Part shown: positions 1 through 13,332 of the stretch, in pieces
Numbering within the stretch: the first letter of the stretch is position 1
How the letters are laid out: every line of letters begins with the position of its first letter
Source of the DNA: Octopus sinensis
Lineage: Eukaryota
Reading direction: 5' to 3'
DNA length: 13,332 nucleotides
NCBI RefSeq assembly: GCF_006345805.1
Contig: NW_021826149.1
Location: forward strand, 1-13,332
Position numbers and translations under genes: made by a program
The notes under the pieces: model-generated
What the model was told of the DNA's origin: nothing
Seen by the model: the letters and a program-made list of their open reading frames with translations, nothing else
Database searches by the model: none

Positions 1-30
1 CACACACACCACACACACATATATTACATA
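1..30. repeat. (CA)n/(TA)n microsatellite at window start
   Basis: Directly visible dinucleotide runs. Confidence 0.9.
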
Positions 31-815
31 TACAAATAAGAAATGGAGGAACAGTTTCCTTTCAATCATCAACTTACAGATAATACAAATTCATATAATT
101 TATTAACTAATTAAATAGAAACATCCAAATCCAACAGAATAAAACAGAATAAAACAATATACATCAATAAGTAAGATAATACCTTAAAAAATATTACATA
201 TAAAATGGATCTTACAGCTGTTTCAGCCTGTAGATAAAGGTAACATTTTACCTTCGTCCATCTAATACAATAAATGAACTAATTGCATTGCAGTTGTAAG
301 CATTTATGTATTAGCCTTTTGGGTACTTCACTGGCAGTATATTGGATAACTGATATCCCATAGTGGGTTACACTCATAACCCCTATCTCACTTTGTACTT
401 TTATATATACATATACATATATATGTATAGCTAAATAGATAGATATAGATATATAAAAGTAAGATCCAAGAATCAAGGAGCAAGAAATTACTTATCTTTA
501 AGCAGTCCATAGATATATAAAAAGACAACTTTCGGGAACAGTAATGGTTTATTGGCGGGGATGATTGTTAATTTTCCCCGCATCGAATTAAGATAAGCTG
601 AAAAAAGTTTATTTTATAGCTCCTGTTACGAACTGGGGTTGTTTTATATGCGAATAAACATCCCAAAATTAGGGAATGGAGTAGATAAAATCCAGGCTAG
701 ACGTTTTAGAGCTAGCGGAAACTCGGAAATAGTAATTATCCAAACGAGGAGTAGACCTCAAACTACACTTCAGGCTAAGAATATCTTGATTATACGAAGT
801 TTCCATTGTTATTGG

Positions 816-877
816 GAGATCCCGTGTTAACTCGCAGGGGAATCGATCGAACACCCAGCGAATTAACACGGGACCTC
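816..877. other. ~62-nt imperfect hairpin
   Basis: tcccgtgttaa (820-830) is the exact reverse complement of ttaacacggga (863-873). Pairing continues with gag/ctc outside and tcgc/gcga and ggg/ccc inside. Confidence 0.8.
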
Positions 878-974
878 ATCGAGAGTAGTAATTGCACCGC
901 TTGCTTTGAAACATATGTAGCCTGGGTTGTTGTATCTACTCTATTCCTTAATTTTTGTGTGTATATATATGTGA

Positions 975-1162
975 CCGCGTGTGTACTGTTGACAATTTTT
1001 TTCCCTCTGTCTTCCCTTCTCTGGGTCTTTCCTTCTCCTATGTTTCCGACGAAGGGCTCTGCTGGAAACGTTTAAACCCTCCTTCTTTCCTTCTTTGCTG
1101 AGCGTCCAATAATACTATTTGTTCCACGTCCTCGCGTTGTTGTGTTTTTTTGTTTGGATTAA
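975..1162 (+). mobile_element. Putative Penelope-like element (PLE) terminal/pLTR fragment
   Basis: Pyrimidine-rich segment containing a decayed minimal hammerhead motif typical of PLE pLTRs and ending at a (CA)n tract. No RT or GIY-YIG ORF is seen, and the boundaries are approximate. Confidence 0.4.
1042..1077 (+). ncRNA. Decayed minimal Type I hammerhead ribozyme motif
   Basis: gttt-CCGACGA-a-gggc-tct-gctg-GAAAC-GTT-t-aaac. Stem I is gttt/aaac and stem III is the palindrome ACGT. U4>C and a stem II closing mismatch suggest inactivity. Confidence 0.5.
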
Positions 1163-1164
1163 CT

Positions 1165-1179
1165 ACACACACACACACA

Positions 1180-1210
<31 letters not shown>

Positions 1211-1223
1211 TACATACATACAT

Positions 1224-1262
<39 letters not shown>

Positions 1263-1287
1263 CATACACACACATATATATATATAT
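1165..1287. repeat. Compound (CA)n/(CATA)n/(TA)n microsatellite
   Basis: Directly visible. Confidence 0.95.
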
Positions 1288-1803
1288 CTTGAAGTTGTTT
1301 TCATTATCGTCGATGTAACTCTTTAGTCCCGGATAATGGCGTACTATTAGCAATTAATTCTCTTAACCATATATACACTAAGACTACATTCTTCAGTTTG
1401 TTCATGCGTTTTAAGGGTGTGGCATTGTAGGGATTTTGTGTCTATTACTGACAGGTAAGCAATAATTATTTGGCTCAATTTACTCCTCATGTGTACCATC
1501 AAAATCCTTCTTCATGAAGAGCTGTGAGCTGTATCTGCTCCTAACGGAACGGACGAGCAAGTGCTTTCCATAATGCGATAATAACCTCGTAACAATAATA
1601 AAGATTTTTTCAGGTACAACCTAAAGGGAAATTCCCGTGGATTAAACGTAAGGACTATTAACACAACGAAGCAGGGTGTATGTTTATTAAACGTATCCAT
1701 ATGGACTTTTCACAAATTATCGACATACATGCAATCTCAGACTTTAGTCTATTTAAGACACACTTCCACTGAATGTATGCATGTATTTATGTATGCATGA
1801 AAT

Positions 1804-1866
1804 ACACACACACACACACACACACAACACACATAGAGCGAGTGAGAGAGAGAGAGAGAGAGAGAG
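1804..1866. repeat. (CA)n followed by (GA)n microsatellite
   Basis: Directly visible. Confidence 0.95.
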
Positions 1867-2035
1867 CAGAAAGAAAAAAGGATACATACATATGTCTAAC
1901 TATATCATTATCTATCTATCTATCTTTCTATTAGAATTCTGTATCTAGATATATACATACATGAACATATATGTGTGTGTGTGCATGTGGTGGTGTGTGT
2001 GTGTTTGTATATGTGTGATTTTGTGCATGTACACG

Positions 2036-2069
<34 letters not shown>

Positions 2070-2070
2070 A
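2036..2070. repeat. (TA)n tract forming the left flank of the ribozyme array
   Basis: Directly visible, with one interruption. Confidence 0.95.
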
Positions 2071-2482
2071 CAATAAAATGGTAAATAATTTTCCTGTGGG
2101 TTTTCATGTAACCAACAATTATTTACCGGTAAATTTCGGTATGTAAATACGACAAAATAATTGTCAAGACCTTGTAAGGTTCAGTATATAGTAAAGAAAA
2201 TAAGTTGGCTAGCAGCAAGCTGTTTCGCCTCATACCGAAGGAATTAGAAATGGCAGTCAAAGACCGTTTTTTCCATTTCTATAAGTGGAGATTCCAAAAA
2301 ACGAAGGCCCTTGCGGCTCACATACACAAAAACGGAGTGGCAAATATACGAATTCAGTCACTTACCGTTAATAGCGAACACGGTGTTTCTGGATCACAAA
2401 CATATAAAAAAAGGGGAGTTTGAATTCCGTCATCAGCGCTATATTCGATAGCTTTATCAAATGCCACCCAGCCCTCACTTCT
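2068..2482 (-). repeat. Inverted partial copy (~415 bp) of the unit
   Basis: The reverse complement matches ~2942-3356 apart from a few substitutions and homopolymer indels. Confidence 0.97.
2363..2450 (-). ncRNA. Type I hammerhead-like ribozyme, copy 1 (intact core)
   Basis: The minus strand reads tatcg-aat-atagcg-CTGATGA-c-ggaattcaaac-loop-gtttgtgatcc-a-GAAA-cac-c-gtg-TT-cgctat-taa-cggta. Confidence 0.75.
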
Positions 2483-2971
2483 GTGTTCGCTATTAACGGT
2501 AAGTGACTGAATTCGTATATTTGCCACTCCGGTTTTGTGTATGTGAGCCGCAAGGGCCTTCGTTTTTTGGAATCTCCACTTATAGAAATGGAAAAAAAAA
2601 ACGGTCTTTGACTGCCATTTCTAATTCCTTCGGTATGAGGCGAAACAGCTTGCTGCTAGCCAACTTATTTTTCTTTACTATATACTGAACCTTACAAAGG
2701 TCTTGACAATTATTTTGTCGTATTTACATACCGAAATTTACCGTAAATAATTGTTGGTTACATGAAAAACCACAGGAAAATTATTTACCATTTTTATTGT
2801 ATTACCATGTGGATTCCTCATTCCATTACGATTACCCAGATGGCGCGCATGGCAGAAATTTGGAGGGAAAATTTACGTTCCCAGTCGTTACTTGGTTTTA
2901 ACATCTGCGCACTTCCCCCCACTATCTGATGTCGCGGGGTCAGAAGTGAGGGCTGGTGGCATTGATAAAGC

Positions 2972-3059
2972 TATCGAATATAGCGCTGATGACGGAATTC
3001 AAACTCCCCTTTTTTTATATGTTTGTGATCCAGAAGCACCGTGTTCGCTATTAACGGTA
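2972..3059 (+). ncRNA. Type I hammerhead-like ribozyme, copy 2 (GAAA>GAAG at 3036, likely impaired)
   Basis: CTGATGA at 2986-2992 with the same stems as the other copies, but position 15.1 is G instead of A. Confidence 0.6.
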
Positions 3060-3526
3060 AGTGACTGAATTCGTATATTTGCCACTCCGGTTTTGTGTAT
3101 GTGAGCCGCAAGGGCCTTCGTTTTTTGGAATCTCCACTTATAGAAATGGAAAAAACGGTCTTTGACTGCCATTCTAATTCCTTCGGTATGAGGCGAAACA
3201 GCTTGCTGCTAGCCAACTTATTTTTCTTTACTATATACTGAACCTTACAAAGGTCTTGACAATTATTTTGTCGTATTTACATACCGAAAATTACCGGTAA
3301 ATAATTGTTGGTTACATGAAAAACCACAGGAAAATTATTTACCATTTTTATTGTATTACCATGTGGATTCCTCATTCCATTACGATTACCCAGAAGGCGC
3401 GCATGGCAGAAATTTGGAGGGAAAATTTACGTTCCCAGTCGTTACTTGGTTTTAACATCTGCGCACTTCCCCCCACTATCTGATGTCGCGGGGTCAGAAG
3501 TGAGGGCTGGTGGCATTTGATAAAGC

Positions 3527-3614
3527 TATCGAATATAGCGCTGATGACGGAATTCAAACTCCCCTTTTTTTATATGTTTGTGATCCAGAAACACCGTGTT
3601 CGCTATTAACGGTA
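3527..3614 (+). ncRNA. Type I hammerhead-like ribozyme, copy 3 (intact core); predicted cleavage after U3600 (GUU)
   Basis: Stem I is atagcg 3535-3540/cgctat 3601-3606, extended by tatcg/cggta beyond a 3x3 internal loop. CTGATGA is at 3541-3547, stem II at 3549-3559/3576-3586, GAAA at 3588-3591 and stem III is ACAC-C-GTGT. Confidence 0.78.
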
Positions 3615-3784
3615 AGTGACTGAATTCGTATATTTGCCACTCCGGTTTTGTGTATGTGAGCCGCAAGGGCCTTCGTTTTTTGGAATCTCCACTTATAGAA
3701 ATGGAAAAAACGGTCTTTGACTGCCATTTCTAATTCCTTCGGTATGAGGCGAAACAGCTTGCTGCTAGCCAACTTATTTTTCTT

Positions 3785-3787
<3 letters not shown>

Positions 3788-3820
<33 letters not shown>

Positions 3821-3846
3821 ATGTATGTATATATATATATATATAT
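3788..3846. repeat. (TA)n tract forming the right flank of the ribozyme array
   Basis: Directly visible. Confidence 0.95.
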
Positions 3847-4248
3847 CTATGCGTGCACGTGTGCTAATACGCCAATAACCAAACATGTGTATATAAACTA
3901 TGTAATTAAAGGTATATCACAGCTTAATATATACGAATGTATCGGAATACACACCGGATGTACTGCAGATGTTAGCCATATTGTGTTCTGTTTCACATCC
4001 ACTTAGTCCCTCTAACATACATACATACATCCGTCGAATACCTGCATGAATAGAATGATAACGGGAATGAATTTCTTTTATATAACCTCCTCTGATGTAT
4101 ATATAGACACATACAAATGGACGCTCAAACTCACACTCCAAACACACGCGCGCGCACATTCGCTTATTTAGCAAATAGAAAATGTAGGTTGCAAAATCTA
4201 AGAAAGAAAAGTGTAATCGACATCTGTTGAAACGGAAACAGTCTATCT

Positions 4249-4482
4249 TATGTATGTATGTATGTATGTATGTATGTATGTATGTATGTATGTATGTATG
4301 TATGTATGTATGCATGTATGTATGTATGTATGCATGCATGTATGTATGCATGTATGTATGTACGCATACATGCATGCATGTATGCAAGTATGTAAGCATA
4401 TGCATGCGTGTATGGTTGTATATATATATATATATAATATATGTATGTATATATAGAGAGAGATATGTATGTATATGCATGC

Positions 4483-4513
<31 letters not shown>

Positions 4514-4546
4514 TAATATATGTGGTGTGGTGTGTGTGTGTGTGTG
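4249..4546. repeat. Compound (TATG)n/(TA)n/(TG)n microsatellite
   Basis: Directly visible; it explains ORFs 3917-4555, 4227-4547 and their overlaps. Confidence 0.97.
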
Positions 4547-4866
4547 AAGGCGCATGGCTCAGTGGTTAGAGAGTCGAGCTTACGATCGTGTGGTTGTGAG
4601 TTCGATTGTTATGTGTTCTTGAGCAAGGCACTTTATTTCACGTTGCTTCAGTTCACTCAGCTGTAGAAATGAGCTGTGATGTCACTGGTGCCAAGCTGTA
4701 TCGGCCCCTTTGCATTTCTCTTGGTTAACATCAGTTGTGTGGAGAGGGGAGACTGGTATGAATGGGCGACTGCTGGCCTTCCATAAACACCTTTGCCCGG
4801 ACTTGTGCCTCGGAGGGTAACTTTCTAGGTATAATCCCATGGTCAGTCATGATCAAAAGGGGTCTC
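4546..4866 (+). mobile_element. tRNA-derived SINE with CORE-like central domain
   Basis: Box A TGGCTCAGTGG (4555-4565) and Box B-like GAGTTCGATT (~4598-4607), followed by ttgagcaaggcac...cagctgtagaaatg, which resembles the CORE domain. Confidence 0.85.
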
Positions 4867-4960
4867 CTCCTATATATATATATATGGCTGAATGTATGTC
4901 ACATCAACATATGTCTTTATGTGTATCTGTTTACATGCACACTTATCTATATAAATATAT

Positions 4961-5189
4961 ATTTCTTTACTACCCACAAGGGGTTAAACACAGAGGGGAC
5001 AAACGAGGACAGACAAACGAATTAAATCGATTACATCGGCCCCAGTGCGTAACTGGTACTTAATTTATCGACCCCGAAAAGATGAAAGGCAAAGTCGACC
5101 TCGGCGGAATTTGAACTCAGAACGTAACGGCAGACGAAATACGGCTACGCATTTCGCCCGGCGTGCTAACGTTTCTGCCAGCTCGCCGC
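4961..5189 (-). mobile_element. tRNA-derived SINE (family A), full length
   Basis: The minus strand starts gcggcgagcTGGCAGAAACGTTAG and has Box B GAGTTCAAATTCC. It is homologous to 9271-9476, 12731-12891 and 12959-13156 in this window. Confidence 0.85.
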
Positions 5190-5195
5190 ATACCT

Positions 5196-5276
5196 ACACA
5201 CACTCACACACGCACACACAAACACACACAACACACACATACACACACACACACACCACACACACACACACACACA
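5196..5276. repeat. (CA)n microsatellite
   Basis: Directly visible. Confidence 0.95.
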
Positions 5277-5603
5277 TTTTATACTGATTAGAAGCGCTAA
5301 CCAGTGATTGAGAGAAACATATACTTGTTACCAGTTCAAATATGTTTTTGAGATATTTGAAACCGAGCTAATCAAATGCACATAAAACAGCAGATGCTTC
5401 GGGACAGGGGTGTGCAAATATAACAAGGAACCAGAAGCATAGATGGCCATCTGGATATGTGCAGCGGAATATGTTGCTTCAGATTTCTTAAGAAACGTAG
5501 ATAATTTTACAAAAGTTCTTAGGTAAATGCTCTAATACCCCTATATGAATGCATGTATATATGTATCTGCACGTCTATGCCAAACTATGCCTGCGGATGA
5601 GCA

Positions 5604-5611
5604 TGTGTGTG

Positions 5612-5672
<61 letters not shown>

Positions 5673-5706
5673 GTCTGTCTCTCTCTCTCTTCCCCTCTCT
5701 GTACTG

Positions 5707-5749
<43 letters not shown>

Positions 5750-5813
5750 ATATATATATATTATATATGTATACACACACCACAACAACACAACACACAC
5801 ACACACATATATA
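5604..5813. repeat. Compound (TATC)n/(TC)n/(TA)n/(CA)n microsatellite
   Basis: Directly visible. Confidence 0.97.
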
Positions 5814-6199
5814 TCTTCTAGAATCGACACACCCTCTTGAAAAACAAAAAAAAAATCATCTTTTTGCATTTCTCTAGATATATAGGTAACGTCATTGAGT
5901 TACACGAATGCATTTATTGTCCATCAGTATCATATAAATACAAATAACCTCGCTAGAAACATGCTAGAAAAATTCAATAAACAGTTATAGTAACATAGTT
6001 AACTCATTCCCATCCTTACCAAACTACGCAGTTTGAAATTCCTTAATAGAATCTAATAACTTAACAAACATTCAACTTTGGTCTGATCTGTACTGTGTGA
6101 CCAACAGATTTATCTACATTTTTGTGGGGAAATCTTAAACAAATAAAAGGCAACATTTTATACAAAGAATAATATCGTAACTTGAATGTCACACACCTA

Positions 6200-7451
6200 C
6201 GAGAGTCGGCTGCAGATTTCATAAGCTGACTAAGTTTGTCTCATGTAATGTGACCAAATGATGTTTATTTTTAAGCATAGTCCCCCTTGCATCGTTGCTT
6301 GCATAGTCCATCTCCCATCGGTGCTGCACTACTTGGATCTTGTTGGTAAAAAACTTTCTTCCTGTTGATCAAAAACCGTCAACAGCAGATATGACATCAT
6401 CATCACTGTAAGATTGGTTCCAACCAAGTTTTTTTGTTTTTCATATTGGGGAAGATATGATAGTCAGATAAGGCCAAATCAGGAGACTAGGGAGGGTGAT
6501 CAACCAGTTCAAAGCCACAGTCAGTAAGGCAGCCATTGAAAGCATGGACTTGTGTGCTGGAGTATTGCCCTGATGAAACAAGAACCCTTTTGTCAATTTC
6601 CCAGGTCGTTTGGTCTTGATAGCCATTCGCAGCTGCCTCAGCAAGTGATGGGCGATCCTTTTGAAGATAGTCAATAAACATAATGTTTTTTGCATCTCAA
6701 AAAAATGAGACCATCGCCTTCACTGCAGATGAAGCAAGCTTGGCATTCTTTGGAGCAAGTGTAGAGGGGTGTTTCCACTGCATGGATTGTCTCCTTGTCT
6801 TAAAGTGATGACGCGAACACTCATCCTGGCTTAGGAAACGTTCAAGGAAAGCAGCTGGATCAGCCTCAAGCAATGTCAGATTTTCTTGAGATGTGGTCAG
6901 CCTGTTGCGTTTTTAATCGAGTATCAGATGCGGTGCACAACGAGCAAAAACCTTCGTCATGTCAAGTTCATCATGCAGAATATTTTCAATTCCTTTTATT
7001 AGCATTGGCTATTTAATCTATAGTCAGTCATCTGTCATCCATCACCATGTGAGGAACACAGTCAATGTTTTCCTCGGTGGTGGGAGTTGCAGGACGTCCT
7101 GACCTTCAAGACTCTCCCTTCCCATGCTAAATTCAGTTGCCCACAACTGTACTGTTGATAAAGCAATGAGCGTCATCACTTAATGTAGCAACTATGTCAG
7201 AATGAATGTCGTTGGGAGATAAACCTTTTTTCTGCTTGTCCTTGATACCACCACAATGCCAAGTCTCTTGTCCGTTTCAAGAGGGGTCGCAACAAGTTAC
7301 TTTTGAAGTCTTCACTGAACAGTCAGATGTCAGTTTGTCTGGAAAGAAAACATGCAGTTATTAAGAAGAGTTGAAAATAATGCAAGCAAGATTTCGCAGA
7401 TCAAGCATCAATCCTTCATAGGCAGCCTATCAACTTTTAAGCCCACCCTTG
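6200..7451 (-). mobile_element. Decayed full-length mariner (Tc1/mariner) DNA transposon, ~1.25 kb
   Basis: Degenerate TIRs: tacgagagtcggctgcagatttcataagctgactaag at 6198 versus the reverse complement of the 7453 end, tacaagggtgggcttaaaagttgataggctgcctatg, give 26/37 matches. TA dinucleotides flank at 6198-6199 and 7452-7453, and there is an internal transposase relic. Confidence 0.92.
6265..7275 (-). pseudogene. Mariner transposase pseudogene (stops, frameshifts)
   Basis: Pieces translate to ESLE..SGRPAT, TKVFARCAPHL (WVPHL motif), SQDE (first catalytic D), FIDYLQK, LLRQLRMAIKTKRPGKLTKGFLFHQGN (second D>G), P*SPDLALSDYHIFPNMK (YSPDL motif) and GDYA*K* (GDYVEK end). Confidence 0.93.
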
Positions 7452-7959
7452 TAAATTTGACACATCTGTTTATAAAAGTTAATTCCCCACTTGACTGAAC
7501 CCTAAACTATAAAAGATTCCTAAATCAAACCCAAATAAATCATTTCACCATAACCTATCAACCAAAAATCTACAAGCATACTTTCTTCCTATCCTCCTTT
7601 ATCCACCTTACTACACAACCACTTCTTTGATCTACTTACGTCACACGTAATTAATCATTTTATATAGCTCCGTCTACCTATTTCATTATGCCGGCTACCG
7701 TCTAATGATATTGACTAGCTAGATTGGCCTTCATACTGGCAAGAAGGGAAAAATATCCCTCAGTGATTCATCCAATAATGCAGTATCCCTTGATGAAATG
7801 AATCAATGATAATGATCAACCGGATGCCCACGGATAATACGGACTATGCTCTATTAATCCCAAGATACTGACTCTGATGTGAAAATCATGTGATTTGTGG
7901 AAACGTGCGTAGCAATGTATGAAATATTTACAAATTCCATCATAGAATTATTGTCATTA

Positions 7960-8020
7960 TATTCTTTTATTCTTTTACTTGTTTCATTCATTTGACTGCG
8001 ACCATGCTAGAGCACCGTCT
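7960..8020 (-). mobile_element. 3' fragment of SINE family B
   Basis: cttttacttgtttcattcatttgactgcgaccatgctagagcaccg matches the tail region at ~10630-10678. Confidence 0.85.
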
Positions 8021-8115
8021 GTATATATATGGGGCAGCTGGTGATGGAAGTATGCTGGATTGTTGGTATGGCTGTTTTTGTATATGTAGAATAGTGTTAT
8101 AATACATCCTTTTGA

Positions 8116-8158
8116 ATATATATACATACACACATATGTATATATATATATATATATA

Positions 8159-8201
<43 letters not shown>
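8116..8201. repeat. (TA)n-rich microsatellite
   Basis: Directly visible. Confidence 0.95.
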
Positions 8202-8584
8202 ATAACGTAAAGTATACTAGCCATCTCAATATGGCTAACCACTAAGGGTGGGTGTTACTGTAGCTTTTAGCCCCAGGAGATCATCGTCTCCAGCTGGCTT
8301 TAGGCACACTTTCTGTGCTCTTATGGTATTTGCAAAGGGAGGTCATCCCTCTCTCGTAAACCTAAGTGATACGCACGGACTGCAGTTTCGAGGTATTTGC
8401 CTCTTGCAGACAGTTTTTCGAAATCAGTGACAGAGGTTACTGGGAAAAACATTATATAGATATTTGCAAACATCGAAAACCGTTGATTACCGTACGTTGA
8501 CAAGATCTCCTGGGGCTAAAAGCTACAGTAACACCCACCCTTAGTGGTTAGCCATATTGAGATGGCTAGTATACTTTACGTTAT
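8202..8584. mobile_element. Element with perfect 81-bp inverted arms (8202-8282 / 8504-8584) and a 221-bp spacer; MITE or fold-back retro-insertion
   Basis: The arms are exact reverse complements when compared base by base. One reading is 78-bp TIRs flanked by TA at 8203-8204 and 8582-8583. Confidence 0.7.
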
Positions 8585-8626
8585 CGAGCGGTTACTGTTT
8601 ACATCTCGTTCAGAGATTTATTATTG

Positions 8627-8631
<5 letters not shown>

Positions 8632-8657
<26 letters not shown>

Positions 8658-8733
8658 AAGAAGAGTATGTACCCTGTCCCCACATATATATGCAAGTATA
8701 ATACGGTTTTGTATCTCTCTCTATATCTATCTA

Positions 8734-8774
<41 letters not shown>

Positions 8775-8805
8775 ACACACACACTTACATATATGTGTGT
8801 GTGTC
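8632..8805. repeat. (TA)n/(TATC)n/(CA)n/(TG)n microsatellite cluster
   Basis: Directly visible, interrupted by short unique stretches. Confidence 0.85.
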
Positions 8806-9060
8806 GGTGTTTGTTTTCTTGTAATTTTTTTATACATGCATATGTTTTTTTCAGCATCCTCGGAAATAACCTGCAGGAAGGAAACGACGTAGATGTTTGC
8901 GTATCTCCGCCTCAATCACAAAGCAAAAAGCATTACAAAACAAAATAAGGAAAGGAAAATATTTAAAAGCAAAAGAAAAGAAGAGAAACACAATTAAGTG
9001 TTAGCAGTAACTATAATTACTTCGGTTTATCACAGATTATATAAGATTTCTTATCTAACG

Positions 9061-9140
9061 GAGTGAGAGAGAAAGAGAAAAGGAGAGAGAATGAAAGAGA
9101 GTGAGAGAAAGAAAGAAAGAGAGAAAGAGAGAGGAGAGAA
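9061..9140. repeat. GA-rich purine tract
   Basis: Directly visible. Confidence 0.85.
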
Positions 9141-9270
9141 AACGTCTGGGCGAATGTATGCGTAGGTGCATGCAATCTATATAACGGCCATCTTTAACAG
9201 ATATTGGCGGATTAAATTTCGCATTTTCCTGTCCGGAGCTTTTGATAGACTTATATGAAAATATATTCAA

Positions 9271-9476
9271 GCAGGCAGAATCGTAAAAGCGTCGTCGGTA
9301 AAATTGCTTGGCGGCATTTGTTAATCGACTCTTTACGTTCTGAATTCAAATCGCGCCGAGGTCAATTTAGTCTTTCATCCTTTCAAGGTCGATGAAATAA
9401 AGTATCAGTAAAATACTCGAGTTGTATCGTCTACTGCCCACCTCCTTCGAAATTGTTGGCCTTGTGCCAAAATTTC
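9271..9476 (+). mobile_element. Degenerate SINE family A copy
   Basis: ggcagaatcg...tttacgttctgaattcaaatcgcgccgaggtcaa...tttcatcctttc..ggtcgat aligns with the 4961-5189 family, and its tail ggccttgtgccaaaattt matches 12959-13156. Confidence 0.8.
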
Positions 9477-9529
9477 AATGCATCGTTAATGTTGAATTCG
9501 TATTCAGATCTAGCACTGTTGTGAGTGGT

Positions 9530-9632
9530 TGTTTACTTGTTTGTTTGTTTGCTTCTTTCTTTCTTTCTTTCTTTCATTTTTTTCTCCTTTCCTTTCGTTT
9601 TTCTTTCTTTTGTTTTTTTTTTCACTTTCTTT
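9530..9632. repeat. T/C-rich low-complexity tract
   Basis: Directly visible. Confidence 0.8.
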
Positions 9633-9686
9633 ATAGATAAATTAATTTCTTTTAAGAATGTGGTAAATCATTCTTTGGTGGAATTT

Positions 9687-9689
9687 ACA

Positions 9690-9722
<33 letters not shown>

Positions 9723-9750
9723 ACACACATACACACATACACACACACAC
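9687..9750. repeat. (CA)n-(CG)7-(CA)n alternating purine-pyrimidine tract
   Basis: Directly visible; the CG run is at 9706-9720. Confidence 0.95.
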
Positions 9751-9903
9751 TGCAACTTTTCCCCCCTTTATTTTCATATGGGTATTCATTATGTTTGCCT
9801 GATGAAGTTTTGTCAAAATGTGAAGAAAAGAGCTAATAAGTTTAGTTCGTTATAAATATTTATTTAGTTGAATTATACACAAGTACTTCCGTGCAATTAG
9901 TAT

Positions 9904-10095
9904 AGAGTGACTGTGTTGTAAGGAGCTTGCTCCGTAACCACATGGTTTCCTTTCAGTCCCACTGCATGGCACGTTAGGCAAGTGTTTCTACTATAGCCTG
10001 GGGCCGATCAAAACCTTGTGAATGGATTTGGTAGACAGAAACTGAAAGAATCCCGTCGTGTATATATATATATATATATATATAGATATATATAA

Positions 10096-10130
<35 letters not shown>

Positions 10131-10171
10131 AATTTATATATATATATACATAAATTATATATTTATATATA

Positions 10172-10214
<43 letters not shown>

Positions 10215-10425
10215 ATGTGTGTGTGTGTTTGTCTGCCTGTGTTTGTCCCCCCTCGATTGCTTGGCAACCGATGTTGGTGTGTTTATGTCCCCGTAACTTC
10301 GCGGTTCGGCAAAACAGACCGATAGAATAAGTACTGGGCTTACAAAGAATAAGTCCTGGGGTCGATTTGTTTGACTAAAAGTGGGGCTCCAGTCAAATGA
10401 CTGAAACAAATAATAGAATAAAAGA
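9904..10425 (+). mobile_element. tRNA-derived SINE family B with an expanded internal (TA)n (10061-10211)
   Basis: The two halves are reverse-complement homologues of 10612-11020. Confidence 0.88.
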
Positions 10426-10611
10426 ATGAAAGAATATATATACTTCGCTTTTCTATCTTTGTATTTAGTTTGCAAGATTCTTTATGTGAAGTCGTGTGTT
10501 GAAACAAATTTTCTTGTTTCTAGGAAGTCATTATGCCAATATAATCAACACTGGTTCAGTTTCACTCCTTCATTATTAGTCATTTTGTTAAACAGTCAGC
10601 TAACTAATTGA

Positions 10612-11020
10612 TTACTCTTTACTCTTTTACTCTTTTACTTGTTTCAGTCATTTGACTGCGGCCATGCTGGAGCACCGCCTTTAGTCGAGGAAATCGACCC
10701 CGGGACTTATTCTTTGTAAGCCCAGTACTTATTCTATTGGTCTTTTTTGCCGACCCGCTAAGTGACGGGGACGTAAACACACCAGCATCGGTTGTCAAGC
10801 AATGCTAGGGGGACAAACACAGACACACACACATACATATATATATTTACATATATACGACAGGCTTCTTTCATTTTCCGTCTACCAAATCCACTCACAA
10901 GGCATTGGTCGGCCCGGGGCTATAGCAGAAGACATTTGCCCAAGATGCCACGCAGTGGGACTGAACCCGGAGCCATGTGGTTGGTTAGCAAGCTACTTAC
11001 CACACAGCCACTCCTGCGCC
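10612..11020 (-). mobile_element. tRNA-derived SINE family B, well preserved, with (AAAAGAGT)-like tandem 3' tail
   Basis: The minus strand starts ggcgcaggagTGGCTGTGTGGtaag and has Box B GGGTTCAGTCCC, followed by ttgggcaa (CORE-like start), an internal CA/TA repeat and a tandem tail at 10612-10640. Confidence 0.9.
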
Positions 11021-11139
11021 GATTGTTTAATTTCTGTTTTGTTTTTGTTTGTCAAAGCTGTGTCATTGCTACATGCAACGTTTTCAATGACTATTGACTT
11101 AGTCTGTTATAAAGACCGCGTTTGTCTGCTTGTGATCTT

Positions 11140-11538
11140 GTTGCGTGCGTGTGCATACGTACCAGCGTGCACATGTGCTTGTCTATGTATGCATGTATGT
11201 ATGTATGTATGTATGTATGCATGTATTCTGCATATTCATGTGTTTGTGTGTATTTGCGCGCTTGTGTGTTTCTGTTTGTATGTATATAGGTATGCGTGTG
11301 TGTGTTTGTGTGTGTATTTGTGTGTGTGTACCTCTGCTTCTTTGTGCATGCGTGTTTGAGTGTGCCTATGCGTATGTTTGTGTGAGCATGTACGTGCACC
11401 TATTATGCATGCATGTGTGCCTGTATGTGTCTTTGTGTGTGTGCGTGTGTGTGGAGTGTGTGTATATAAGGTCATGTGTTTCTGTCTCATGTGTGTGTGT
11501 AAGTCTGTGTGTGTGCTTCTCTGTCAGTACTACCTACG

Positions 11539-11615
<77 letters not shown>

Positions 11616-11616
11616 G

Positions 11617-11683
<67 letters not shown>

Positions 11684-11700
11684 GTCTGTCTGTCTATCTA

Positions 11701-11731
<31 letters not shown>

Positions 11732-11736
11732 TTATC
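11140..11736. repeat. Large compound (TATG)n/(TG)n/(TATC)n microsatellite
   Basis: Directly visible; it explains the long ORFs at 11145-11807 and overlaps. Confidence 0.95.
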
Positions 11737-12091
11737 TTCTTACTTGTCTTTTTACCTACCTATTAGTTTGCCTATCTTCCCACCTATCTACCTACATTCA
11801 TAATTAAGTAACTAACAATCTATATAACCTAACCATCTAAAATCTGCCTACCGACCGACCGACCTACCTGCCTCCCTACCTACGAATAACTTAATAAAGA
11901 AATAACTTAATAAAGAAATACCTACTTACGAATGTAGTTATGTTTTGCAGATATTAGACAATATTAGACAATATCTGCAAAGTATTTTTATATGATAATT
12001 ATAGTGTAAAACTTTTCACAAATATTCTCAAAGTATCTCAAAGATAAAATTTGTATTCACTTATTTTAATGAAAATAATAGGATAGACGCG

Positions 12092-12093
<2 letters not shown>

Positions 12094-12142
<49 letters not shown>

Positions 12143-12157
12143 AGAAAGAGAGAGAGA
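12094..12157. repeat. (GA)n microsatellite
   Basis: Directly visible. Confidence 0.97.
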
Positions 12158-12376
12158 CGGAGCTATTGCAATGAATGAGAATTAGCTCTGTGGTTAAAGT
12201 GTGCGGTTGAATGTTCGATACCAAATGAAATTTTAAAACCTCATATTAATAAGAATATATTAAAACTAAAATTTATGACCATATCTCAGACATTTTAGAA
12301 TATTATAAATGCTTCCATCTAATAGAACGCCAATTGATTAAAAAGCAGCTTTCGTCATTAAAGTAGAGATACGTTT

Positions 12377-12653
12377 GTGGAGGCGCAATGGCCCAGTGGT
12401 TAGGGCAGCGGACTCGCGGTCGTAGGATCACGGTTTCGATTCCCAGACCGGGCATTGTGAGTGTTTATTGAGCGAAAACACCTAAAGCTTCACAAGGCTC
12501 CTGCAGGGGGTGGGGGTGAACCCTGCTGTACTCTTTCGCCACAACTTTCTCTGTGGAGTGCTCAGCCACTTGCACGTTAATTCCACGAGCAAGCTGTTCC
12601 GTTGATCGTATCAGCTGGGACCCTCATCGTCGTAACCGACGGAGTGCTCCTTA
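12377..12653 (+). mobile_element. tRNA-derived SINE (family C) with a 12-bp target-site duplication
   Basis: Box A TGGCCCAGTGG (12389-12399) and Box B GTTTCGATTCC (12433-12443). AGAGATACGTTT occurs at 12365-12376 and 12654-12665. Confidence 0.9.
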
Positions 12654-12730
12654 AGAGATACGTTTCGGACGCCGAACTGGGAGAATTGTTAAAGCAACAG
12701 AAACAAATGCCTTTGAGGTAAATGTTACAA

Positions 12731-12891
12731 CTCTTTACGTTCTAATTCTGCGGACATTAACATTGCAATTCAATTTATGGGGGTGGGGAAAATTAAGTAA
12801 GGTACCAGTCAAGTACTGGGACACTTAAATGATACTATTTACTTGATTAGCCAACCCCGTCGAAATTGTTGATCTTGAGCCTAAGTCAGAA
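12731..12891 (+). mobile_element. Highly degenerate, 5'-truncated SINE family A copy
   Basis: ctctttacgttct...aattaag..gtaccagt..gtactggg...gaaattgttg.tcttgagcc aligns loosely with the other family A copies. Confidence 0.6.
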
Positions 12892-12958
12892 CTCATTTGG
12901 TATATACGTAAGTATATATACACTTACAATTCTGTATGTATCAATGTATATTCATATA

Positions 12959-13156
12959 TTGGTTTCAAATTTTGGCACAAGGCCAGCAGTTTTAGAGGAG
13001 TAAGTCGATTTCATCGACCCAGTGTTTAACTGGTAATTATTTTATCGACCCCAAAAGATAAAGCCGACCTCAGCAGAATATGAACTCCGAACGTAAGGAC
13101 GGTCGAAATGCCGCTAAGCATTTTACCCGATGTGTTAACAATTCTGCCAGCCCGCC
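12959..13156 (-). mobile_element. SINE family A copy
   Basis: The minus strand reads gggcgggctggcagaattgttaaca...cttacgttcggagttcatattctgctgaggtcggc...ggccttgtgccaaaatttgaaacc. Confidence 0.85.
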
Positions 13157-13300
13157 CTCTTAATGCATATTCATTTATCAAGTCTATTCATTATACCTTT
13201 CAATTTTATCTTCTTTCGCTTCAGTGTACCTGAGATCTTCCAGCTGCAGTCTATTTTTACTTTTGTTCTTTGTTCTTGTTTAACGAAGTTAAAAATTATC

Positions 13301-13303
<3 letters not shown>

Positions 13304-13332
<29 letters not shown>
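13304..13332. repeat. (TA)n microsatellite at window end
   Basis: Directly visible. Confidence 0.95.

Follow-up and report, generated by a model that had tools for sequence, protein, structure and literature searches.

The 13,332-nucleotide stretch of Octopus sinensis DNA analysed here (NCBI RefSeq assembly GCF_006345805.1, contig NW_021826149.1, positions 1 to 13,332 of the forward strand; hereafter the window) contains, at positions 2068-3793, a tandem array of a 555-nt repeat together with an inverted partial copy of the same repeat. Judged from its sequence, this locus is probably an insertion of a non-coding, non-autonomous retroelement of ~555 nt, of the animal retrozyme or Penelope-like element (PLE)-dependent kind, bearing a variant and possibly weak hammerhead ribozyme. 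On the best reading of the array, the insertion was a single and fairly recent event, and the repeat is young.

Architecture of the insertion

Positions within the repeat refer to a reference unit, window 3046-3600 (555 nt), in which position 1 is the first base 3' of the proposed cleavage site. By blastn of this unit against the window, alignment, and repeat analysis, 2068-3793 resolves into an inverted partial copy followed by direct units of 558, 555, and 193 nt, the direct array amounting to ~2.4 tandem copies. The inverted copy (2068-2483, minus strand; delimited by blastn, inverted repeats I1-I8, and alignment) is 5'-truncated and 416 nt long, and consists of unit positions 450-555 fused seamlessly to positions 1-318, reverse-complemented. 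It is followed on the plus strand by a junction with the last 5 nt of a unit, GTGTT (2483-2487; sequence reading and alignment), by full unit 1 (2488-3045; blastn and alignment), which has a longer A-run and other private variants, by full unit 2, which is the reference monomer (3046-3600; blastn, composition, and folding), and by a 3' partial unit comprising positions 1-193 (3601-3793; sequence reading, blastn, and alignment). Mutual identity among the copies is 98-100%, and the tandem units and inverted copy that an earlier note on this DNA had described are thus confirmed. No further copy of the unit was found by blastn within the window.

The array is flanked on both sides by (TA)n microsatellite, at 2036-2070 on the left (the presumed target site; Tandem Repeats Finder (TRF) and sequence reading) and at 3788-3850 on the right (TRF). 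Both outer ends of the insert lie within TATA-like strings of the unit that overlap the flanking (TA)n by 3-6 nt: the left end shares ~3 nt of TA microhomology with its flank, and the right end shares TATATA, which is also the terminal string of the array, where a reading of the sequence finds no poly(A). Inside the (TA)n microsatellite, no target-site duplication is recognisable. At the junction between inverted and direct parts, G2483 is common to both (a 1-nt microhomology), and the arms of the inversion are offset by 101 nt, such that unit position 450 is joined to 551. The unit boundary (555/1) is crossed seamlessly four times across the array.

An assembly or read artefact, in which a chimeric fold-back long read or a mis-collapsed repeat created the inverted copy or inflated the array, has some points in its favour. 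PLE insertions have been noted to cause assembly problems (Craig et al., 10.1101/2021.04.23.441226), and of the ~14 sites that vary between copies in the alignment, ~8 are homopolymer-length differences, which are typical of long-read errors. However, every copy has private variants, and these include substitutions as well as indels; the 101-nt offset of the arms is not that of a simple fold-back; and the (TA)n is continuous on both flanks. An artefact is considered very improbable.

PLE insertions have several hallmarks, including partial tandems, an adjacent inverted 5'-truncated copy at the 5' end, and a microsatellite bias (Craig et al., 10.1101/2021.04.23.441226). Similarly, the octopus locus combines a partial tandem with an adjacent inverted 5'-truncated copy, and a microsatellite target with the absence of poly(A). 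Bona fide PLE loci, used as controls only, were retrieved with the published Poseidon_Ac protein (reverse transcriptase/endonuclease, RT/EN; PMC11167929 supplement) as query, which gave 4594 matches; none of the 120 matches listed was from a cephalopod. In one of these loci (L002, a PLE of the weevil Sitophilus oryzae), an inverted 5'-truncated copy lies upstream of a direct copy, and the same layout is present in a lamprey locus (L003). In L002 (2189-2860 and 5226-5398), the inverted/direct junction has an 11-nt duplication, ggtatacggta.

The orientation of the two parts of the octopus array can also be considered in terms of cDNA synthesis. The left part is minus-sense (cDNA-sense) on the top strand, running from unit position 318 back through 1/555 to 450, and the right part is minus-sense on the bottom strand, running from position 193 back through three 1/555 boundaries to 551. 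The two cDNA start points (193 and 318) are ~125 nt apart, which is compatible with independent internal initiation but differs from the 30-40 bp tail that internal initiation of reverse transcription leaves at one end of PLE insertions. When purified, a PLE protein cuts both DNA strands and extends them, and it initiates reverse transcription internally on RNA (PMC11167929). Overall, the sequence features support a PLE-type insertion architecture that fits cDNA priming from both DNA strands, and the involvement of PLE machinery, which the earlier note had mentioned for animal retrozymes, is supported here by the partial tandem, the inverted truncated copy, the (TA)n target, and the lack of poly(A).

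Because all four 555/1 boundaries are seamless, the template appears to have been longer than one unit, and thus either a circle or an uncleaved multimer. The earlier suggestion of rolling-circle reverse transcription stands to the extent that more than one unit was copied; a circle and an uncleaved multimeric transcript are indistinguishable from the DNA. In the proposed mechanism, a PLE-type endonuclease/reverse transcriptase would cleave the (TA)n target on both strands, each 3'-OH would prime cDNA internally on the element RNA (whether circle or uncleaved multimer) at TA microhomologies, in a form of twin priming, and the two cDNAs would be joined via the 1-nt microhomology. As for the helper element, Naiads prefer (TA)n targets and are present in Octopus spp. 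(Craig et al., 10.1101/2021.04.23.441226), and the (TA)n target of the present insertion points to a Naiad- or Neptune-type PLE.

Alternatively, the locus could have originated at the DNA level without an RNA intermediate, by replication slippage or unequal exchange in a satellite together with fork-stalling and template-switch inversion at a fragile (TA)n. The junction microhomology of just 1 nt, the proneness of (TA)n tracts to breakage and hairpins, and the single known locus are all in keeping with such an origin. However, it needs a pre-existing 555-nt source, which is not found elsewhere in the window, and it leaves the hammerhead motif described below unexplained. Furthermore, both outer ends lie in TA microhomology inside one microsatellite, as expected of an insertion, and the tandem and inverted-truncated layout is a PLE signature that recurs in bona fide PLE loci. 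A DNA-level origin is regarded as improbable, and both it and misassembly are less likely than either a retrozyme-like, PLE-dependent insertion or a PLE-mobilised repeat with a non-functional motif, which is weighed in the following section.

The hammerhead-like motif

Three hammerhead-like motifs occur at an identical unit position in each copy: one in the inverted copy (2371-2442, minus strand, with CUGAUGA from 2436; descriptor scan), one at 2980-3051 (plus strand; sequence reading, alignment, and motif scan), and one at 3535-3606 (plus strand; descriptor scan and folding). Each combines CUGAUGA with a helix I of 6 bp, a helix II that is long, and a helix III that is quasi-palindromic, in the layout 5'-AUAGCG / CUGAUGA / C / GGAAUUCAAAC-(16-nt loop)-GUUUGUGAUCC / A / GAA / ACA-CCG-UGU / U ↓ CGCUAU-3', in which the arrow marks the predicted cut. 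This cut follows GUU and falls after U3600 (plus strand) or after 2377 (minus strand). Helix I (AUAGCG/CGCUAU) extends in the predicted fold via a 3x3 internal loop into a closing stem. Helix II is paired at nine of 11 positions and is closed by the 16-nt loop, and helix III can be drawn as 3 bp and a triloop (ACA-CCG-UGU) or, alternatively, as the quasi-palindrome ACAC-C-GUGU. An extra C follows A9 and an extra A separates the 3' strand of helix II from G12; together they form a C·A 1x1 loop in the place next to the core that G10.1-C11.1 should occupy.

CUGAUGA-C...GAAA, a feature of PLE minimal hammerheads, is found in two of the three copies, namely the intact motifs of the inverted copy and of 3535-3606. 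The middle motif has GAAG for GAAA, with G3036 corresponding to A15.1->G. The A15.1 position is invariant in hammerhead mutagenesis, and thus the core of the middle motif is probably impaired. The earlier note's statement that three hammerhead-like folds share a unit position therefore holds for the position, but an intact core is present in just two of them. Likewise, the assignment to Type I hammerheads stands as a type I-like motif at a fixed position, but not as the canonical form, since the motif is of a PLE-like form in which an extra A precedes G12; this A and the substitution at 3036 are two departures from the consensus that had been overlooked. The available features partly support a plausible but non-canonical hammerhead ribozyme, as a PLE-like variant.

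A chance origin of the motif is unlikely. The descriptor, which allows 0-1 extra nt on either side of helix II, matches only the two intact motifs within the window, and on 200 Mb of composition-matched random sequence it gave 0.105 matches/Mb, or 0.005/Mb for matches as good as the candidate. The expected number per unit, over both strands, is ~1e-4 for any descriptor match and ~5e-6 for one of candidate quality. In monomeric form, the hammerhead fold (-15.1 kcal/mol) is separated by ~2 kcal/mol from the minimum free energy (MFE) fold (-17.1 kcal/mol). In a co-fold of two motif copies, the dimer MFE (-41.8 kcal/mol, compared to 2 x -17.1) is a complete double hammerhead, in which helix II is intramolecular, helices I and III are intermolecular, and both cores are unpaired; the duplex energy of helix III as ACAC-C-GUGU is -10.6 kcal/mol. 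None of 106 random descriptor matches, taken from 800 Mb, had a hammerhead-compatible monomer or dimer MFE. Additionally, the direct array starts at GTGTT↓CGCTAT, 5 nt 5' of the predicted cleavage site, and a junction within 5 nt on either side of the predicted cut would occur in ~11/555 (2%) of cases if placed at random. Among the control loci, the direct copy of L002 has its start no more than 2 nt from the cut site of the hammerhead (TT↓AGGAAGC), and the direct copy start of L003 is not at the hammerhead cut site.

A search with hammerhead covariance models, which the earlier note had recommended, did not recover the motif: Rfam reported no hammerhead or other ribozyme, either at gathering scores across the whole window or at E<=10 for segments of 1.85 kb and 131 nt, and its matches in the window were microsatellite-driven, miRNA-like noise only. 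However, Rfam (release 15, E<=10) also reported no hammerhead in three control PLE loci (L001-L003), and the simple descriptor finds textbook minimal PLE hammerheads beside the open reading frames (ORFs) of control loci. For instance, L002 5308-5342 is a minimal PLE hammerhead, CCU-CUGAAGA-U-GCUAGC...GCUAGC-GAAAC-GUU↓AGG, and others are located at L003 5425-5459 and L005 4662-4697. In these control hammerheads, helix II is a perfect 6-7 bp, with G10.1-C11.1 directly adjoining G12. Routine Rfam annotation is thus blind to minimal PLE hammerheads, and because textbook examples were missed, its silence says little on motifs of the PLE type.

Several observations nevertheless weigh against the interpretation of the locus as a retrozyme with a hammerhead. 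Helix II contains two internal mismatches, and its GGA/UCC segment is set off from G12 by the extra A, such that G10.1-C11.1 does not adjoin G12, although this pair is highly conserved in PLE and canonical hammerheads (PMC4209133). The extra A is absent in four of four distinct bona fide PLE hammerheads retrieved, all of which are of class (1,0), and the descriptor was widened to admit it once the candidate was already known. A core substitution affects one of the three motifs, the monomer MFE differs from the hammerhead fold with a z-score of just -0.5, and no Rfam model matched. Moreover, metazoan non-LTR (long terminal repeat) retrozymes usually measure 170-400 nt (PMC7229834), less than the 555-nt unit, and the (TA)n-preferring Naiads known from octopus are without hammerheads (Craig et al., 10.1101/2021.04.23.441226). 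Exact scans with 22-25-mers gave 0 matches in metagenome contigs, viral contigs, and prokaryotic genomes (no animal genomes among them), and exact look-ups of the unit ORFs in public assemblies gave no match. Neither these searches nor the window yielded a second locus, relative, or transcript that could show covariation, conservation, or dispersal of the family.

If the motif is a dead relic or a coincidence, then the locus would represent a non-autonomous tandem element mobilised by a PLE (for example, a Naiad dependant), with multimers arising solely from the copying of its template by the PLE reverse transcriptase. The (TA)n preference of Naiads, their occurrence in Octopus spp., and their lack of hammerheads favour this possibility, as do the departure from the conserved core layout and the lack of an Rfam match. 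In vitro, hammerhead cleavage is dispensable for PLE insertion, and the main substrate is unprocessed RNA (PMC11167929). Furthermore, a whole-genome scan at 0.005-0.1/Mb would meet tens to hundreds of chance motifs in a multi-gigabase genome, and the motif alone is thus no proof. In contrast, the chance of such a motif in one 555-nt unit is at most 1e-4, the complete double hammerhead of the dimer has no counterpart among the 106 chance matches, helix I continues into an internal loop and closing stem, and 5 nt separate the array boundary from the predicted cut site. That the motif is dead or coincidental is possible but unlikely, and the insertion of a retrozyme-like element with a variant hammerhead remains the preferred reading.

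Proposed RNA cycle, coding capacity, and neighbouring repeats

The unit appears to be non-coding. A chimera of all its six-frame ORFs had 0 matches in a set of 5.8 billion proteins, no Pfam family scored above its threshold for the ORFs of the unit, and the unit is without the RT and GIY-YIG endonuclease ORF of an autonomous PLE. The absence of such an ORF, as stated in the earlier note, is consequently borne out; beyond the unit, no long non-repetitive ORF of the window suggests an RT, with a mariner remnant set aside. The GC content of the unit is 40.2%, which falls in the low-GC range (<45-50%) of animal non-LTR retrozymes. No tRNA-like part, as in the head of a short interspersed nuclear element (SINE), was detected by ARAGORN. 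Other classes of element were rejected: a Helitron for lack of Helitron ends, a SINE dependent on a long interspersed nuclear element (LINE) for lack of poly(A), and an LTR retrozyme for lack of an LTR, primer-binding site, and polypurine tract.

In the proposed RNA cycle, the hammerhead encoded by the unit would be of type I and PLE-like, its helix III being short and quasi-palindromic. Within multimeric plus-strand transcripts, neighbouring motifs would pair as a double hammerhead and cut after GUU, and cleavage would yield 555-nt monomers whose termini would be 5'-OH and 2',3'-cyclic phosphate. A host RNA ligase could circularise these monomers; monomer ligation by host RNA ligase has been shown for other retrozymes (PMC7229834). 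The circular unit has a predicted MFE of -151.3 kcal/mol (z = -4.2 relative to dinucleotide shuffles, with none of 200 shuffles as stable), and the GAAA box is sequestered in the predicted monomer and circle folds, such that the circle would be shielded from being cut again. If the motifs act in pairs as double hammerheads, cleavage at 3045 would fall to the intact 3'-most core and cleavage at 3600 to the G3036 core, while in single-ribozyme mode the assignment would be reversed, with the G3036 core acting on 3045 and the intact core on 3600. A 555-nt monomer bounded by cuts after 3045 and 3600, as originally predicted for this locus, is thus in register with the unit, but its release in single-ribozyme mode is expected to be compromised by the substitution in the middle motif. 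As modelled, the locus would be partly crippled for self-processing.

No cephalopod hammerhead or retrozyme is described in the literature searched. The repeat may represent an undescribed cephalopod retrozyme family whose ribozyme, a new core variant, works exclusively in the double-hammerhead form and whose helper is a Naiad- or Neptune-type PLE that targets (TA)n; as a joint claim, this is unlikely. The core variant in question would comprise the C·A 1x1 loop between helix II and the A9/G12 layer and a 5-nt palindromic insertion in helix III. The element would then be a ribozyme-bearing parasite of a PLE clade that is itself without hammerheads, and the locus would have captured the twin-primed copying of a circular RNA, over more than one unit, by reverse transcription, with an array boundary at the ribozyme cut site.

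If the retrozyme reading is confirmed, hammerhead-bearing retrozymes would be extended to cephalopods, and one cleanly readable insertion would tie a retrozyme to the PLE integration mechanism through both-strand priming, a microsatellite target, and the copying of more than one unit. This link has so far been inferred mainly from co-occurrence and from similarity to the PLE pseudo-long terminal repeat (pLTR). The hammerhead variant would additionally probe the tolerance of the junction between helix II and the core. If the motif is inactive, the locus would be another ordinary non-autonomous PLE-type repeat. The locus has the value of a clear illustration, and no new principle would follow from it unless the core variant is active or the helper is a hammerhead-less Naiad.

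The window contains other repeats. Microsatellites are very dense (30 TRF rows in 13.3 kb), including (TA)n, (AC)n, (TATG)n, (TATC)n, and (AG)n, with tracts at 1165-1274, 4249-4521, 5196-5773, 9061-9750, 10061-10211, and 11539-11737, among others; they generate spurious long ORFs and miRNA-like Rfam noise. A 383-bp element at 8202-8584 has perfect 81-bp terminal inverted repeats (8202-8282 and 8504-8584) and abuts (TA)n at 8116-8197. It could be a miniature inverted-repeat transposable element or a second, small inverted-plus-direct PLE-type insertion in a TA microsatellite, and the descriptor finds no hammerhead motif in it. An interspersed repeat of ~300 nt is present in at least three copies with 85-89% identity (7960-8023; 9986-10392, minus strand; and 10620-10930, plus strand). 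Its minus-strand copy is split by (TA)n at 10061-10211, and it has a SINE-like look, with no tRNA-like part by ARAGORN. Finally, the mariner remnant at 6437-7262 (minus strand) derives from a mariner/Tc1-type transposase (PF01359) and is decayed, its reading frame being broken by frameshifts and stop codons. At the protein level it reaches at best 64% local identity, to a SETMAR-like protein of Octopus bimaculoides, and it has 70% DNA identity to two public contigs.

Comparison with known systems

The octopus unit shares several characteristics with metazoan non-LTR retrozymes (Cervera & de la Peña 2020, PMC7229834; PMC7761336), including head-to-tail non-coding repeats of low GC (40%), a single hammerhead-like motif of type I in each unit, whose weak helix III points to action as a dimer, a circle that is stable and self-paired (here predicted), and a presumed dependence on PLE machinery. 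Those retrozymes have a canonical hammerhead with a 4-bp helix II and loop-loop contacts, whereas the present motif is nearer to the minimal PLE type, apart from the extra A before G12, and the octopus unit is known from the sequence of a single locus. Retrozymes have been reported to be pLTR-derived PLE dependants (bioRxiv 10.64898/2026.07.22.740005), and a retrozyme-like unit with a PLE-type insertion agrees with that claim.

Minimal hammerheads of PLE pLTRs have an additional nt following A9, and their helix II is long and their helix III palindromic (Cervera & de la Peña 2014, PMC4209133). The octopus motif similarly has CUGANGA with one extra nt, a longer-than-usual helix II, and GAAAC...GU with palindromic 15.x/16.x positions, and it is likewise missed by Rfam; its GUU cut triplet is also that of the weevil PLE. 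The palindromic 15.2-16.2/loop 3 region is predicted to permit a double hammerhead, as in the minimal PLE form. In contrast to that form, the octopus motif lacks G10.1-C11.1 closing helix II beside the core. Further differences are a helix II paired at nine of 11 positions, with its 16-nt loop and the C·A 1x1 loop at its base, a 5-nt insertion (ACCGU) in helix III, and the absence of an attached RT/EN ORF.

At the level of integration, the octopus locus resembles Naiad and Neptune insertions (Craig et al. 2021), which share the partial tandem with an adjacent inverted 5'-truncated copy, the (TA)n target, the lack of a recognisable target-site duplication, and a reported occurrence in Octopus spp. 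However, Naiads are 3.4-4.4 kb long, encode EN and RT, and are without hammerheads, whereas the octopus unit is 555 nt long, non-coding, and has a hammerhead-like motif.

Newt satellite 2 and Schistosoma Sm-alpha, which were compared by description only, are likewise tandem or SINE-like repeats that are transcribed into multimers. Their type I hammerhead has a short helix III and cleaves as a double hammerhead, a form that is predicted here. They differ in having canonical cores that match Rfam RF00163 and are experimentally active. Finally, L1 twin priming provides a mechanistic analogue: both 3'-OH ends of the target break prime cDNA on the RNA, and joining through microhomology produces an inverted and a direct segment. 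The octopus insertion differs in that poly(A) is absent and the template would be longer than one unit. Furthermore, L1 uses an APE-type LINE enzyme, whereas the enzyme acting here would be that of a GIY-YIG PLE.

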